Sequence record: LC667451.1
Length of the DNA: 64,000 bases
Strand: one strand, 5' to 3'
Of the stretch, positions 579 to 14,470 are shown piece after piece; position 1 is the first letter of the stretch, and every line of letters starts with the position of its first letter. A program made the position numbers and the translations under genes. The notes beneath the pieces are model-generated. The model made no database searches, was not told the DNA's origin, and saw only the letters and a list, made by a program, of their open reading frames with translations.

Positions 579-2708
579 TTAGTGCGTGTCGCTTACAAGT
601 CTCGTAAGCTTGTCGTTTTGCATGTAAATGCCTAACGTTTCCAGGATGATGTAAAAGACCTTGGTCGCATCGGCGACGATCTTTCGCACCCCTGCCACCT
701 GCAGGATCTCTTTCGGAATACCGTTGGTTTGCAGGTTCTGCTCCGGTAGCTGCACGGCACCCAGGTAGCGCTTGTTCATGCGCTTCATGTAGTTTTCCAT
801 GCGCTCGGCCAACTGACGGTCTTCCAGACCATCCAGCCATTCCTTGGTCTTGGTCGGCGTGTCGAGATCGGTGGCGATCTTAACGCAAGTATAGGGGACC
901 GGGGGAGCCACGCCATACTTGGGACCGAAGACTTCATTCCACATCACGTACTGCTGGTACGGCGACTCGTGTGCTTCCTTCGCATATGACTCGGGTGGTT
1001 TGATCTGACCCATGCGGAAGAAGTGATATCCACCTTCGCCAATCGCTTCGAAGATCTGACGCTCGATGTCGCCGATCGTCTTCAGGATCTGCTGGATCTT
1101 GATCTTCTCGCCACGCAGTACCGAATTCATGATAAAGAGCATCATCTTCTCCGCTTCCTTCATCACGAAGCGCGGCGCATTGGACGCCTTCAAGTGCACG
1201 CCCTTGATCTCTTTCTTGTAATCCTTAAACAGGTTCCCTTCCTGGCAACCTATCAGTGCAAAGTAGTGCTTGGCCACCTGTGTCGGAATGAACACATCGA
1301 ACTTGAACTCGTTCTTCATCGCCACCTTGTGGATATACTTCTCGACGATCCCGAAGTTCGCACTCATACGTGCCAGCACGTGAATGATGGTCTGGGCTGC
1401 CAGGAACACCATCGATGCAGCCACTGCATTGCACTTCTCATCAAAACCCAGCCAACCCTGATGCCAAAGCACCCAGTCTTGCACGGTAAAGATGGTGGAA
1501 TCCGTATCCGAAGTCAACGCTGAACGACGGATCGAATCCGGGAAGAAGGCCAAAGACGCCGGAACGTTGGTCGTCACCCAGAAGGCGCGAATCAGGTCCC
1601 GATACTCTTCACCCACATCCCCAATGTTCTTGGCGGTTGCCGCCACAATCCCACGTGCTTCACCTTGAATCTCGTGCAGCTGCAAACCCTTGGTGTAGCG
1701 TTCGCAAATCTGACACGCCAGGTGCACGTGTTCTTCCATCACCTTCTTGATGATGCTATCCGGGTCCGGATGCGGCGTTTCCACCATCATCGAGAGCTTG
1801 GTCACGTACTCACGCACCACAGCTTCGTTGAACTTCATCAGGTGGTACAGATCCCCGGTGTAGACGAAGGCCGAGCGTTGTTCCGGCGTCAACGTCTTGA
1901 CCAGTCGATACACACGCAACAGTTGGAACTTGTCGCGCCAGTACAGATTGGTCGAGTAGGCGATGCACTCCATCGTCTCTTCCACTGTCGGATGACGAAT
2001 GCCGAACTTCTGCATGGCGTGCGCTTGCGCTTCGTAGTCCGTGTGGTTACAGATCGAGATGATGTTGTTCATCGTGATCTCGGGTGACCAGTAATGCCGA
2101 TTGCCTGAGAGGAACTTCTCGTTATTCGCGTTCCCGAACCCCGAGGTCGAGCGGCAGTTCGAGGTGAGCGTCGAGTGGGCTGTCTTGTTGTACAACGGCG
2201 TCGACGGGGAAACGTGGGCACCTGAGATGGAGTTGTTCGCCAGCTTCTTGTTGGTCTGCTCGTTATCCTTGATTTGCATCAGGACAATGTCGCCTTCCAT
2301 TTCCGCCTTGAACTTCGCCTTCTTGGCTACGCCCCGTGCCTTCACGTTGGCCTCGATGTAATCCACCAGAGGCGATTGCAAGACATCCGGGTGCAAGTAC
2401 GTGGTCAGCGTAGGTGCAATCAGTTCCCGGTTGCGAATCGAATCATTCAGGTAAGCACCCAGAGTGCCTTCCATGCGAACTCGATCCCCGTTGTCCCCGC
2501 GCTCCAGGTAAATGATCTTGGGGTCCTTGAACTCGAACTGACCACCAGGCTGCATCCCTGTCTTCACGAAGGTGATACATTCCTCACGGGTACTACCTGG
2601 CGACATCTGGTGCATGTATGCCGCCACATCCTGAACGTAGTCGCGCAACGGATTAATATCGCGCTTATAACTACTACTGGGCAAAACGAAGGGATTATCA
2701 GCTTCCAC
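579..2708 (-). CDS. Family-B DNA polymerase, catalytic subunit of the split phiKZ-type polymerase
   Basis: 709 aa. PolB motif C 'LTSDTDSTIF', motif-B-like 'KKLANNSISG' and 'KEIKGVHLK'. GTG start with AAGGAG SD (complement at 2718-2723). Confidence 0.9.
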   Translation of the reverse strand: MEADNPFVLPSSSYKRDINPLRDYVQDVAAYMHQMSPGSTREECITFVKTGMQPGGQFEFKDPKIIYLERGDNGDRVRMEGTLGAYLNDSIRNRELIAPTLTTYLHPDVLQSPLVDYIEANVKARGVAKKAKFKAEMEGDIVLMQIKDNEQTNKKLANNSISGAHVSPSTPLYNKTAHSTLTSNCRSTSGFGNANNEKFLSGNRHYWSPEITMNNIISICNHTDYEAQAHAMQKFGIRHPTVEETMECIAYSTNLYWRDKFQLLRVYRLVKTLTPEQRSAFVYTGDLYHLMKFNEAVVREYVTKLSMMVETPHPDPDSIIKKVMEEHVHLACQICERYTKGLQLHEIQGEARGIVAATAKNIGDVGEEYRDLIRAFWVTTNVPASLAFFPDSIRRSALTSDTDSTIFTVQDWVLWHQGWLGFDEKCNAVAASMVFLAAQTIIHVLARMSANFGIVEKYIHKVAMKNEFKFDVFIPTQVAKHYFALIGCQEGNLFKDYKKEIKGVHLKASNAPRFVMKEAEKMMLFIMNSVLRGEKIKIQQILKTIGDIERQIFEAIGEGGYHFFRMGQIKPPESYAKEAHESPYQQYVMWNEVFGPKYGVAPPVPYTCVKIATDLDTPTKTKEWLDGLEDRQLAERMENYMKRMNKRYLGAVQLPEQNLQTNGIPKEILQVAGVRKIVADATKVFYIILETLGIYMQNDKLTRLVSDTH

Positions 2709-2766
2709 TTATTGTCACTCCTTGTCGACCTACAGGATCACGCAAGGGGATAAAAAACAAATCGAC

Positions 2767-2818
2767 GGCATAAAAAGGAAAAAGGAGAGGGACGATTCGG
2801 GCCGTCCCTCTCTAAGAC
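2767..2818 (-). terminator. Intrinsic terminator hairpin with TATGCC tail
   Basis: Stem GAGAGGGACG (2785-2794) / CGTCCCTCTC (2803-2812); on the minus strand followed by T-tracts and TATGCCG. Confidence 0.7.
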
Positions 2819-2895
2819 TACAGGTCGTTACAAAGCAAAGCTTACAGCATTCAACCGCTTGGTCGCGAAACCAACTTCCAGCTACCATCCAACTG

Positions 2896-3231
2896 AAATC
2901 GGGGTAGACCATTGGGGCTGACCCATTCTTAGTTCGCCACTCGACCGTTTTGGCAGGGAGACTCCCGATTAATGCGGCCATTGCGGGTGCGGAACCGCTC
3001 AAGCTGCAATCAGGACAGGGTCGAGCACGTGGCGAGCGCGTCACATCAGGGAAACAAGGAAGAAACCCAAAGTAACGGAATGAATCAGCCCCGGCCTAGG
3101 CAATGGCGCGGTGGCTCTTGCGAGCTCGCGCAGGAGTTCTCGATCATTTGCAGGCGGGAGGAGGAACCGCATGGATAATCGAGCACGGGCTTGCCGGGCC
3201 CTTCTCTTCAGAACATTACGGAACCCCGATA
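2896..3231 (+). ncRNA. Putative structured non-coding RNA A (~335 nt), family unknown
   Basis: No credible ORF. Nested helices 2898-2905/3223-3230, 2913-2921/3085-3093, 2932-2946/3019-3037, 2981-2986/3004-3009 and 3113-3122/3129-3138. G-U wobbles form only on the + strand. Confidence 0.6.
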
Positions 3232-3244
3232 AATTTAACTGAGG

Positions 3245-3646
3245 TTACGCTATTGTCAGTGCCACATTGTTGTAACCATTGGCTACCAGCGCCGCCTGGA
3301 TCTTCGGGATGTCCTGCGGTGTAACACCGCTGATGGTTGCCGTCACGGTCTGGGCCGTCACAAGCGTCACCGAGCTATCGACAATCCAGGGTACCCCCAG
3401 GATCGTGTATGCGCCACTTTGCGTCTTGACCTTGATGTACAGGTACGAAGACGGGTCATTCGGTGTGTTGGTCTGTGGACCAAACGAGGGGAAAAACTTG
3501 ATGTGCAGCGACGTGACGTCCTTCTGCTTCATCGCGTCTTCATACGACATCACCGAGGTGACCTTGACGTTGTTCCAGTCATTGCCGAGCAGGCTCGGGT
3601 ACACCTGGAAGTTGTACGTCTGCCCGATTTGGAAGTTATAAGCCAT
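3245..3646 (-). CDS. Conserved jumbo-phage protein, probably virion structural (133 aa; start re-assigned to MAYNFQ)
   Basis: Strong host-like codon bias from 3646; beta-rich sequence; position next to the polymerase resembles phiKZ-like phages as I recall it. Confidence 0.75.
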   Translation of the reverse strand: MAYNFQIGQTYNFQVYPSLLGNDWNNVKVTSVMSYEDAMKQKDVTSLHIKFFPSFGPQTNTPNDPSSYLYIKVKTQSGAYTILGVPWIVDSSVTLVTAQTVTATISGVTPQDIPKIQAALVANGYNNVALTIA

Positions 3647-7019: not shown

Positions 7020-7079
7020 AATAGCTCCTTATACAAACCATACGCCGGTTACGTTTGTTTTACCTTCGCATGGTCCAAC

Positions 7080-7139
7080 GGCATAAAAAAATAATCAGTC
7101 CCATTTGTACCCTCTTTTGGAGAAGGCATAAATGGGACT
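7080..7139 (-). terminator. Intrinsic terminator with TATGCC tail
   Basis: 10-bp stem AGTCCCATTT (7097-7106) / AAATGGGACT (7130-7139); on the minus strand followed by a T-rich tract and TATGCCG. Confidence 0.75.
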
Positions 7140-7140
7140 C

Positions 7141-7789
7141 GGCTCCCCCCACGAATTACCGTAATCAGACACTGGATGATCCAGGCTGAACGGAGTTACT
7201 GGGCAGGAGCCGGTCGGGACATCTCAAACACGAGCCAAGGGTTAGGTCCTAGTGCGATCTTCCAGACAGTCTGCAGACCATCTTTTTACCCGTCCCGTAG
7301 GCGGTGGACAGAAGCTTCGGATACTCCCTTGAAAACTGGCGTGTTTATTGCCTACTGCGCACCGGTGGTGGCAGTCTACTTGGTCTAACAGGTATCAAAG
7401 ACTTCCTAGCGCCTGAATGCACCCCCTACGCCTAATGCGCGGTTCGGCTGGTATGGAGCTAGGAGTCCGCGCATGGCCAAATCATCGGTCCGAATCAACA
7501 AGCCATGCGCGTCGCCTCAATGGCTGAAGGTACTACGGAGTCCCTTACCCCGCGTTGCCTTCCCCAGTCGGGGACGTCGCGCATGATGTCTATTCACCCC
7601 CAGACGCGCCTCCGGGAGTGAGGACCGATGAACTTTACGGTCAGCGGCGGCTTGAATCGACGGAAACCACGAAAAATCGTGATAGACAAACCGTGCGAAA
7701 TCACTCCACCACCACCTGGCCAACGATCTAAATTGGCCAAACATCGGTTCTTATTGCCTTTGTATCGTGGTTGGTCCGCTAACCCCGTG
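7141..7789 (+). ncRNA. Putative large structured non-coding RNA B (~650 nt), family unknown
   Basis: Gene-free. Helices 7141-7146/7206-7211, 7275-7280/7381-7386, 7297-7304/7348-7355, 7469-7477/7502-7510 and 7717-7723/7733-7739. Perfect 10-bp pairing 7482-7491/7622-7631 starts from a hairpin loop (pseudoknot). G-U wobbles favour the + strand. Confidence 0.6.
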
Positions 7790-13751: not shown

Positions 13752-13820
13752 GGTACTCTCCTAGTTTCCAGTGTTGGTTAAGGTAACTCAAGCGACTCTA
13801 TTGGCTTGATGTCACCCCAA

Positions 13821-13842
13821 GAATATATGTTTGAAATATTTT
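13821..13842 (-). promoter_or_regulatory. Candidate early (virion RNAP) promoter, ACATATATT in AT-rich context
   Basis: Minus strand reads AAAATATTTCAAACATATATTC, similar to the phiKZ early TATATTAC consensus. The same ACATATAT occurs at 32280-32287. Confidence 0.45.
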
Positions 13843-13889
13843 TGAATCGAGATTTGACGGCATAAAGGCCAGGATCGACCCCGGCCCAA

Positions 13890-14280
13890 TTTTTCGCTAG
13901 TTCTACTTCAAGTAAGAAAATATCTTAATCTTACATGATACGATTCCAAGCGATATCCTCTCTAGGAGTATAATAAAGAGGGGGCTTCCGCCCCCTCTAC
14001 GCTATTCTCTTCTACTCCGCTTCGCTCCGCGTCGCTCTGCTCCTTGACACATAAGTGATTAGCTATGCAGTATTTTTTTACTAGAATAGAGAAATAGTCT
14101 TTAGAATCAATGACTTAGAACTGCGTAGCAAATAGCCGGGGGAGGGCTTGTCCCCTCCCCCTCTTTTTAAAAAGTTCTAGGTAGCTGAACGCAAAGGAAG
14201 ATCGAGCGCTGGCGCGAGGGGGAAGGAAAAGACCAGCGTAGCGACAGAGAGTGTACGGACAGGCATTGGTTTGTATAGTA
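13890..14280. other. AT-rich divergent intergenic region with hairpins and (T/G)CGCTC(C/T)GC-like repeats; possible origin or regulatory hub
   Basis: Strand switch point; low GC; hairpins at 13979-13998 and 14137-14162; iterated CTCCGC/TTCGCT/GTCGCT at 14012-14044. Confidence 0.35.
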
Positions 14281-14470
14281 CGTGAATGACACCGCATGGC
14301 CGAAAACCCGTCCAGCGTTGCAAACCTTTCTTAGGGGCGCGGCGGGCGGCGGGAATTTATCGTGCTCCTCAATCATGTTAGGACCTGCAGGCGCCAGTGT
14401 TCTTTTATCCTGTAGGCTCAAATATTGTGAGCACCTTTTTTCCGTTCCTACACCCCTAGAGGAAGAACCC

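Follow-up and report, generated by a model that had tools for sequence, protein, structure and literature searches.

A conserved structured RNA beside the DNA polymerase gene of Burkholderia phage FLC9 and its uncultured relatives

The interval between gp3 and the DNA polymerase gene (gp2) of Burkholderia phage FLC9 very likely harbors a conserved structured RNA, which, with high probability, is encoded on the minus strand like the genes on either side. The same element was found in 13 uncultured relatives, all of them IMG/VR contigs, with 68-88% identity to the FLC9 gap. The FLC9-type gp3/polymerase intergenic RNA is a new, previously undescribed RNA family, and a literature search found no published description of it. 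As an overall explanation we favor a conserved, structured, minus-strand non-coding RNA that would act by pairing with ribosome-binding sites, a proposal that we hold tentatively, as possible rather than probable.

In bacteria and phages, few non-coding RNAs exceed about 300 nt and are strongly supported by covariation, and most of those that have been solved are ribozymes or components of ribonucleoproteins. Gene expression in phiKZ-like jumbo phages is unusual, as they use RNA polymerases of their own and the well-studied members form a nucleus-like compartment; to our knowledge, their RNA biology has hardly been explored. The RNA described here would be the first well-supported large RNA family of these phages. 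One of its carriers, FLC9, is in culture and has a tractable host, Burkholderia glumae. The element keeps a fixed place beside the DNA polymerase gene in several lineages, and its two invariant loops, which resemble the anti-Shine-Dalgarno (anti-SD) sequence, offer two experimental handles. Published FLC9-type genomes are, in this respect, under-annotated.

The window, that is, the whole stretch of DNA analyzed, comprises bases 1-64000 of FLC9 (LC667451.1, 321.8 kb). As the window codes for a divergent family-B DNA polymerase and a phiKZ gp29-type protein, FLC9 is classified from its sequence as a phiKZ-like jumbo phage. The element sits in a 536-nt unannotated, ORF-free gap (2709-3244), and all clearly real neighboring genes lie on the minus strand (Table 1). 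The product of gp3 matches the solved structures of the baseplate ring protein PHIKZ049 (E = 5e-10); gp3, annotated by similarity as homologous to this phiKZ protein (gp49), is the last gene of a structural operon. Hence, the RNA is located where a structural operon meets a replication gene.

Table 1. Features of the gp3/gp2 interval in FLC9 (window coordinates)
Feature	Position	Strand	Basis or remark
gp3	3245-3646	-	Pfam 'SH3DP'
AT-rich spacer from the gp3 stop to the core, AGUUAAAUUUAU running into the CG of P1	3232..3244	-	conserved block
Structured core, ~335 nt	2897..3231	-	covariance models R1 (2897-3101) and R2 (3099-3231)
Invariant 5' segment UUCCGUAAUG and putative hairpin H1 (UUCU-GAAG-AGAA)	3202..3222	-	invariant columns
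Hairpin H2 (RGGC-CCGGCAA-GCCY)	3187..3201	-	pair switches
Hairpin H3, apical loop with invariant CCUCCUCC at 3158-3166	3139..3183	-	covarying stem
Hairpin H4 (GCGCG...CGCGC, variable tip; GCAA tetraloop in FLC9)	3106..3131	-	
5' arms of P5 (UAGGC) and P6	3078..3098	-	partners at 2905-2928
Hairpin P6a, 14-nt apical loop	3048..3072	-	loop invariant, stem covaries
Inner domain: P7 (interrupted stem), P8, P9, P10	2929..3047	-	helices 79-100% paired
Variable 3' tail, one or two small hairpins, final invariant UUGUAACGACCUGUAG (2818-2833)	2813..2896	-	
Intrinsic terminator, 11-bp G+C-rich stem (2785-2812) and U-tract	2775..2812	-	terminator scan
CTTTTTATGCCG, promoter-like motif of the polymerase gene (neighboring unit, not part of the RNA)	2766..2777	-	directly after the terminator
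AGGUCGACAA	2731-2722	-	complementary to UUGUAACGACCU (2833-2822)
gp2, DNA polymerase	579-2708	-	Pfam 'divDNApol', E = 1.6e-240

Folding of positions 2896-3231 from FLC9 gave a minimum free energy (MFE) of -138.8 kcal/mol on the plus strand (z = -3.56) and of -140.0 kcal/mol on the minus strand (z = -5.12), and on either strand none of 100 shuffles folded as well. Structure is thus present, and the strand is undecidable from one sequence. The initial annotation of this DNA had proposed a closed, multi-branched non-coding element at 2896-3231, and its outline has held: the extent was delimited correctly (the conserved core spans 2897-3231), the ends pair (ATCGGGGT, 2898-2905, with ACCCCGAT, 3223-3230), the first domain consists of a long stem (2913-2928/3078-3093) around an inner three-way domain, the hairpins of the second domain lie where they had been placed, and a purine-rich stretch is present at 3048-3078 if the plus strand is read. 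An Rfam search and a covariation analysis of the homologous gaps had also been proposed. Both were carried out: the window yielded no family match, and compensatory changes support the fold, whose structure is conserved in the relatives.

In the 13 close contigs the polymerase is 85-92% identical to that of FLC9 and the gap measures 530-580 nt. Together with FLC9 they form four groups (FLC9 and L007; L008, L009 and L040; L017; L010-L016 and L032) with 10 distinct sequences. RNAalifold yielded, for the gene-sense strand, a consensus of -92.2 kcal/mol (covariation term, -9.95) with 80 pairs, 23 of them compensatory, and single-sequence folds of ten homologs displayed one shared architecture on this strand. 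When the alignment was divided between two covariance models, double changes were found in 42 of the 93 modeled pairs: the 3' domain (R1) is 94.8% paired, with double changes in 27 of its 63 pairs, and the 5' domain (R2) is 90.2% paired, with double changes in 15 of 30. For both domains, none of 500 shuffles matched the observed percentage of pairing, the number of double changes or the covariation score; further pair types in the 5' domain were no higher than in its own shuffles. Sliding the partners by 1-3 columns made pairing fall to 37-46%. Between clades, no ORF keeps its position or length, and the element is predicted to be non-coding.

When the same alignment columns were read on the plus strand of the window, the consensus dropped to -62.9 kcal/mol (covariation term, -4.5), with 72 pairs, 14 of them compensatory. 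The long stem collapses in that reading because positions that form G-U pairs on the minus strand turn into A-C. Among pairs predicted for both strands in the homologs, the ratio of G-U to A-C is 29:3 in the minus reading; realignment to the two covariance models raises it to 80:7, with the proviso that this alignment leans towards the model. FLC9 alone, if only the helices kept across homologs are considered, gives 10:1 in the minus reading. In L019, a more distant contig, a U10 tract follows directly after the 3' arm of P6, which is further evidence for the minus strand.

The plus strand had been the choice of the initial annotation, which envisaged an independent small RNA, antisense to the genes, such as an RNAP decoy, a protein sponge or an RNP scaffold; as a sponge or decoy, it would act through purine-rich, SD-like or GGA-rich single strands. 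The G-U pairs adduced for it do exist: the plus-strand MFE structure of FLC9 contains 14 of them, against 9 on the minus strand, and this excess explains why the first reading went astray on the strand. The plus-only pairs are, however, not the conserved ones, and the helices of the homologs favor the minus strand. Besides beating its shuffles, the plus-strand fold has one helix of its own that can always form, in which two invariant blocks pair (GGGAGGAGG with CCUUCUCUU, three G-U pairs); this pairing could be an alternative reason for the conservation of the blocks. Yet the plus consensus is weaker than the minus consensus by 29 kcal/mol, A-C mismatches break its long stem, the asymmetries of 80:7 and 29:3 point the other way, and the plus strand lacks promoter- or terminator-like signals, whereas a conserved terminator lies downstream on the minus strand. 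Covariation, pair asymmetry, consensus energies and the terminator therefore speak against a plus-strand RNA, which we regard as very unlikely.

The sponge hypothesis falls with the strand on which it rested. A GGA-motif or SD-like sponge needed the plus strand, and the motifs exposed on the true strand are pyrimidine-rich and anti-SD-like; a CsrB/RsmZ-type sponge was discarded on the same grounds, its GGA-rich stretches being on the plus strand and the transcribed strand being minus, and also for want of an Rfam match. A resemblance to tmRNA had been noted as well, and shared traits are the presence of GGGGCUGA near one end (on the plus strand) and a similar overall length. This motif turned out to be one arm of the long stem P6, on the non-transcribed strand. 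The accompanying remark that tmRNA features are absent was confirmed by ARAGORN, which detected no tRNA or tmRNA in the 64 kb, and by Rfam: the element has no tRNA-like domain, CCA end or tag frame.

Strand-asymmetric compensatory changes in 42 of 93 modeled pairs are not predicted if the conserved sequence is no functional RNA at all, be it a DNA-level element (a replication origin or an array of protein sites) or a decayed mobile insertion in a hotspot. The variability of the locus might be invoked for such an origin, as the gp3-polymerase interval ranges from 19 to about 890 nt among jumbo phages, some of which carry small ORFs there, and the element is absent from RP12, FLC6 and phiKZ. On the other hand, neither internal repeats nor extra copies of the element were found in the window and the related loci, an exact-pattern scan with the invariant 5' block gave 0 matches in 185,579 bacterial and archaeal genomes, and there is no GC-skew feature at the position of the element. 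Small ORFs in the same gap of other contigs showed no Pfam domain, and thus provide no evidence for a homing-endonuclease remnant. We consider this explanation hardly credible. Two mobile or toxin-related candidates were discarded separately. A group I intron conflicts with the stop codon at which gp3 ends, with a polymerase gene that has its own SD and start and aligns to Pfam from residue 11, with the intervening terminator and promoter motif, with the separate genes found in all relatives, and with the lack of an Rfam intron match. ToxI-like RNAs of type III toxin-antitoxin systems consist of tandem repeats, each about 36 nt long, that precede the gene for an endoribonuclease toxin; here there are no repeats, and the neighbors are a PHIKZ049-like baseplate protein and a DNA polymerase.

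Read 5' to 3' on the minus strand, the core begins with P1, continues with the 5' domain (H1-H4), and ends with P5 and P6, which surround the three-way domain (P6a, P7-P10). The closing stem P1 has 8 bp only in FLC9 and L007 and shrinks to 4 bp (AUCG/CGAU) in the more distant clade; these four are conserved, with one U-A to C-G switch. A 35-nt block at the 5' end, which includes H1 and H2, is identical in 14 of 14 homologs and recognizable in L019, and matches to the invariant 5' segment in a pattern scan came from the FLC9-type family alone. No covariation of H1 was seen in the homolog alignment, and its pairing is only putative. H2 shows a switch between G-C and A-U (4 and 4 sequences) and another double change in L019. 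In H3, nearly the whole stem is replaced between clades, with double changes in 8 of 13 pairs, while the loop remains unchanged. In the G+C-rich H4, pairing is 100%, and 5 of the 9 pairs carry double changes.

P6 comprises 15-16 bp; its 15 modeled pairs are 100% paired. Double changes are seen in 6 of them, and numerous switches from G-C to G-U or from U-A to U-G preserve pairing on the minus strand only. P6a corresponds to the stretch described initially as purine-rich and unpaired, read on the other strand, and its loop is UUUCUUCCUUGUUU in FLC9 and UUUCCUCCUUGUUU in all relatives. Within the inner domain, P7 leads to P8-P10; P9 spans 2983-2998 with a UCCGCA loop, and P10 is a small hairpin. 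Double changes occur in P7, P8 and P9, and the junction UUAAGA is invariant. The 3' tail varies in length (85-120 nt, with indels between homologs), and the invariant 16-mer that closes it is single-copy in the window.

Core, tail and terminator would together make a transcript of about 450 nt, extending to about position 2775, and a full-length fold with tail and terminator retains the core. The RNA likely ends at this strong terminator. All close relatives retain it, and its stem differs in sequence between clades yet still pairs (GAGAGGGACG/CGTCCCTCTC, CCAGGGGTGG/CCACCCCTGG and GCGAGG-GGCGG/CCGCTCCTCGC). The 5' end is less clear-cut. Motifs of the type TTTATGCC(G/C) lie upstream of gp1, 2, 10, 19, 20, 21, 23 and 25, and they match the core of phiKZ late promoters, TATG with G as +1 (PMC4666361). 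No promoter of this TATG type precedes the RNA in FLC9, where TTTATCG is found instead; the spacer resembles the recurrent motif TTTATGCCGT without equaling it, and could be a variant promoter or a processing site. In more distant relatives, TATG(T/C)AG lies directly after the gp3 stop codon. An own promoter is therefore plausible in those relatives and uncertain in FLC9, where, for lack of a TATG promoter upstream, the RNA may instead derive from the 3' end of the gp10-gp3 operon transcript, either directly or by processing. A sigma-70-like promoter at 3259-3232 was disregarded, as its -35 element is not conserved in the distant clade and phiKZ infection is rifampicin-resistant, that is, host RNA polymerase is dispensable (PMC4666361).

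Such an origin raises the question of a cis role, either as a long structured 3' UTR that would shield the gp10-gp3 late operon transcript from 3' exonucleases and insulate it from the polymerase unit, or as a long polymerase leader with a terminator that only a part of the transcripts would pass. With no TATG promoter directly upstream in FLC9, co-transcription with gp3 is the simplest scenario, and the terminator at the end of the RNA agrees with it. So does a 10-bp complementarity between UUGUAACGACCU and AGGUCGACAA, which brackets the terminator and is invariant in both arms in all homologs: AGGUCGACAA runs into the polymerase SD (AAGGAG, 2723-2718), and in read-through transcripts the stem would partly cover this SD. 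Conditional termination is known in phiKZ 5' UTRs (PMC10914365), and another conserved structured stretch at 7085-7515, with the same terminator-plus-promoter ending, suggests a general architecture in this phage. For protection from exonucleases, however, the terminator hairpin would suffice, and 335 nt with invariant single-stranded loops are not needed; a promoter-like motif dedicated to the polymerase gene lies beyond the terminator; no antiterminator pairing was found between core and terminator, which are separated by the variable 85-120-nt tail; the terminator stem covaries independently; and RP12, FLC6 and phiKZ-type phages do with 100-270 nt at this place. On balance, a cis function seems somewhat unlikely. 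The translational operator of T4/RB69 gp43, a hairpin of about 36 nt within the initiation region of its own mRNA, is a related case in that an RNA element lies just upstream of a phage family-B polymerase gene, near its ribosome-binding site. It differs in that a terminator and a promoter-like motif separate the FLC9 RNA from the polymerase gene.

In descriptive terms, the RNA comes closest to the class of terminator-bounded short non-coding RNAs found upstream of genes in phiKZ, which derive from 5' UTRs or intergenic regions, measure 71-196 nt and are candidates from ONT-cappable-seq and Grad-seq (PMC10914365; see also the review PMC13282480). Like them, the FLC9 RNA belongs to a phiKZ-like phage, is intergenic, would run in the sense of the downstream gene and has a terminator just upstream of that gene. 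The comparison is one of description, and the class is not a homology family: the FLC9 RNA has a core of about 335 nt and a total of about 450 nt, the genome positions differ, the homologous gap of phiKZ-type phages measures only about 200 nt, and no covariation support has been reported for the phiKZ RNAs.

Searches for further members yielded a narrow distribution. The window scores 139.9 bits with R1 and 121.6 bits with R2, and the 13 close contigs score 117-235 bits. Beyond them, R1 matches the 3' domain in L018 (E = 3e-5), where the inner domain is far shorter, and R2 picks up L022 (E = 1e-4) and L019/L020 (E = 3e-3) by their 5' domain. These copies lie in the same gap, on the gene-sense strand, at 34-54% G+C; L019 preserves the 5' motif nearly letter for letter, and the apical loops of L018, L019 and L022 carry CCUCC, CCUUCC or CUCCUU. 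Many of the more distant jumbo-phage contigs, with polymerases 50-59% identical to that of FLC9, have ORF-poor gaps of 430-700 nt at this position. Adding L019 and L022 to the alignment behind a third model, R3, brought in no further members; ORF-free gaps of similar size in L021, L027, L031, L034 and L042 showed no demonstrable homology with the element.

A blastn search (65-70% sensitivity) of 50,697 phage records retrieved FLC9 itself only. The published relatives RP12, RP31, FLC1-1B, FLC6, RSL2, the phiKZ-type phage SL2 and LucasX have about 100-350 nt in the gap, with no similar sequence. A metagenome scan with the invariant 5' block returned only a duplicate of L017. Eight additional viral matches to an 18-mer from the P6a loop lie inside ORFs without flanking similarity and were attributed to chance. 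Rfam 15, which covers 6S, CsrB/Rsm, RNase P, SRP, group I/II introns and riboswitches among others, gave 0 matches at gathering threshold in the window and 0 in 14 related loci; when E values up to 10 were admitted for 2650-3350, four chance-level matches of 13-16 bits appeared (a miRNA, a plant-virus pseudoknot, a lncRNA and malK-III). GOLLD, ROOL and HEARO/omega RNA are comparable in that they are phage-borne, several hundred nt long and endowed with an elaborate fold backed by covariation. Their covariance models gave no match even at E up to 10, and the FLC9 element, unlike them, has no neighboring tRNAs or IscB/TnpB-type genes and keeps a fixed synteny beside the DNA polymerase gene.

The most constrained single-stranded parts of the RNA are the H3 loop (CCUCCUCC) and the P6a loop (UUUCCUCCUUGUUU). 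Both resemble the 16S anti-SD core, are unpaired in the fold of every homolog, and show complementarity to ACAAGGA(G/A) sites. The P6a loop complements AAACAAGGAAGAAA exactly; it is also complementary to a recurrent ribosome-binding motif of FLC9, AAACAAGGA, and to a shorter form of it, ACAAGGAG, which is the site of the polymerase gene. ACAAGGA occurs in the -22 to -1 region of 5 of 43 genes (gp2, 7, 11, 18 and 34), against 0.13 expected, and slightly further upstream than the ribosome-binding region in gp35; half of the AAGGA-type sites of FLC9 carry the extra AC. Of the 8 relatives that have a gp7 ortholog, 7 keep the gp7 site, AAACAAGGAA, and the homologs show no change in the polymerase site, GACAAGGAG.

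A mechanism can be proposed from these complementarities. The RNA would be supplied either by the 3' end of the upstream operon transcript or by a weak promoter of its own, and would be released at the terminator. Its H3 and P6a loops would then base-pair with purine-rich ribosome-binding sites, the main candidate targets being the AAACAAGGA(A/G)-type sites of gp7, gp11, gp34 and gp35; the shorter form ACAAGGA would add gp18 and the adjacent polymerase gene (ACAAGGAG). Pairing may lower or time the translation of these targets. The closest functional analogy is provided by riboregulators in which several hairpins expose C/U-rich apical loops for pairing with Shine-Dalgarno sequences, such as RNAIII of Staphylococcus (about 500 nt) and the RsaE/RoxS class, which work in Gram-positive bacteria. 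Similarities are the presence of several stable hairpins, pyrimidine-rich loops complementary to GGAGG or AAGGAG, and a size in the range of RNAIII. In contrast, the FLC9 RNA is Rfam-negative, is encoded by a phage of a Gram-negative host, encodes no peptide, and has a target pairing that we infer from complementarity.

Several observations make this mechanism, taken by itself, doubtful. SD-like complementarity arises easily by chance from any CU-rich loop and is mostly generic to the SD: only one of seven window matches to the loop complement is a ribosome-binding site, and the loops of L018, L019 and L022 match the local polymerase site over the SD core only. The P6a loop did not covary in trans with the initiation sites of gp7, gp11 or gp2, loops and proposed targets all being (nearly) invariant; where the loop has CUUCC in FLC9 and CCUCC elsewhere, the gp7 and polymerase sites are unchanged. 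Over 9 nt, the region upstream of gp7 also matches the invariant 16-mer in reverse complement, a match that was put down to chance.

A closed multi-domain fold of 335 nt also exceeds the needs of a pairing regulator, and hints at a protein partner or another activity. The boldest reading is a dedicated anti-SD mimic encoded by the phage and conserved in several lineages of phiKZ-like jumbo phages, whose 16S-like CCUCCUU loops would compete with ribosomes, or with a factor reading the 16S 3' end, for a particular class of initiation sites; alternatively, the RNA may have a ribonucleoprotein or catalytic role of a kind not yet known from phages. We view this reading as quite unlikely. If real, the mimic would serve as an RNA-level switch for translating the replication genes of the phage, or as a decoy for a host factor or defense directed at the anti-SD region.

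More generally, the RNA may bind protein, either as the scaffold of a phage ribonucleoprotein or as a decoy that titrates a host or phage protein able to read pyrimidine-rich or anti-SD-like loops. The partner could be ribosomal protein S1, a defense nuclease that targets RNA, or one of the factors working at the 16S 3' end. Large RNAs with protein partners typically show this kind of size, closed architecture and invariant loops and junctions, and the element combines its size and closed multi-domain build with the invariant segments UUAAGA, UGCCUAG and UCCGCA; besides, its loops are conserved as sequence, beyond what complementarity demands, across clades of 30-57% G+C. Against this, no partner could be singled out, there is no consistent linkage to an RNA-binding gene, the neighbor gp3 is a baseplate homolog, and relatives retain gp3 and the polymerase without the RNA. 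A protein-binding role, inferential as it is, thus appears unlikely, and ribosome-binding-site pairing by a minus-strand RNA remains the reading that we prefer.

Two other conserved features were observed about 4 kb from the RNA: a small conserved ORF, and a second conserved structured stretch (7085-7515) that also ends in a terminator and a promoter motif.

Besides the structured RNA that lies between gp3 and the divergent family-B DNA polymerase gene gp2, FLC9 harbors another conserved stretch devoid of open reading frames, located between gp11 and gp10. Identity to seven relatives ranges from 73 to 86%, and the consensus fold is more stable on the minus strand (-126 kcal/mol) than on the plus strand (-106 kcal/mol). 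The fold comprises 116 pairs, 25 of which present double changes, and the stretch yields counts of 94 for G-U against 9 for A-C. A terminator, followed by TTTTTTATGCCG, marks its end. Comparison with Rfam produced no match for this stretch, and the two elements are unrelated. The gp11-gp10 stretch is probably a further large structured RNA. An open frame close to this element is maintained in FLC9 and in all six aligned relatives, and is likely to be a small gene missed by annotation.

Features detected in the FLC9 window and in the phages RP12 and FLC1-1B
Feature	Position	Strand	Evidence
Conserved gp11-gp10 stretch without ORFs	7085-7515	minus	conservation, consensus fold, G-U/A-C counts
ORF of ~75 aa, without annotation	7517-7744	minus	open frame in relatives
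Recurrent motif TTTATGCCGT	2766-2777, 7079-7090; also upstream of gp1, 19, 20, 21, 23, 25
Inverted repeat arms UUGUAACGACCU and AGGUCGACAA	2822-2833 and 2722-2731	minus	identical arms in homologs
ORF-free gap of ~430 nt upstream of gp3-like gene	L002 2016-2452 (RP12); L004 1788-2213 (FLC1-1B)

The motif TTTATGCCGT is often found directly 3' of a terminator in FLC9, and it looks like the FLC9 equivalent of the phiKZ TATG promoter. Most of the distant jumbo-phage contigs read (L018, L021, L022, L031, L034 and L042, not L019) carry the same TTATGCC motif upstream of the polymerase gene. In RP12, the motif follows a terminator-like hairpin and lies ahead of ORF004.

Upstream of gp2, the inverted repeat UUGUAACGACCU/AGGUCGACAA flanks a terminator and the promoter-like motif, and adjoins the polymerase Shine-Dalgarno sequence. 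Judging from the fact that both arms are unchanged in 14 of 14 homologs (FLC9 and 13 IMG/VR contigs that carry the RNA), the repeat is under selection. As the arms are identical, covariation is uninformative on their candidate pairing.

RP12 and FLC1-1B lack the RNA in the interval that separates the gp3-like gene from the polymerase gene. Both phages possess an ORF-free gap upstream of the gp3-like gene, without sequence similarity to the FLC9 element; that of RP12, the one read of the two, ends in a terminator-like hairpin and TTATGCCG. In five distant contigs (L021, L027, L031, L034 and L042), the gp3-like and polymerase genes are separated by gaps of 480-710 nt, either ORF-free or with short open frames only, for which there is no evidence of conservation. 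Long hairpins are predicted in these gaps, and that of L034 also shows a CU-rich loop (UUUCUUUCCUUU). The covariance models of the RNA family detected none of the five, which may be highly diverged family members or analogous RNAs. A large unannotated gap of 719 nt (13752-14470) is also found in FLC9 between the divergently transcribed genes gp21 and gp22.

The neighboring gene gp3 (3245-3646, minus strand) belongs to the Pfam family 'SH3 fold domain associated with phage DNA polymerases'. Solved chains bearing the name PHIKZ049 match this family (E = 5e-10), and so does a further 'SH3 fold domain-containing protein' (E = 2e-17; 28 chains, 2 entries). Because of the PHIKZ049 match, and because phiKZ gp49 is assigned to a baseplate ring in a cryo-EM atlas of 2026, gp3 is probably a structural protein and not a subunit of the polymerase, and the family name may be misleading (PMC7824862).

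The same extended motif for ribosome binding, (A)AACAAGGA(A/G), recurs in a subset of FLC9 genes (gp2, 7, 11, 18, 34 and 35); base-pairing to the usual 16S 3' end does not account for its ACA part.
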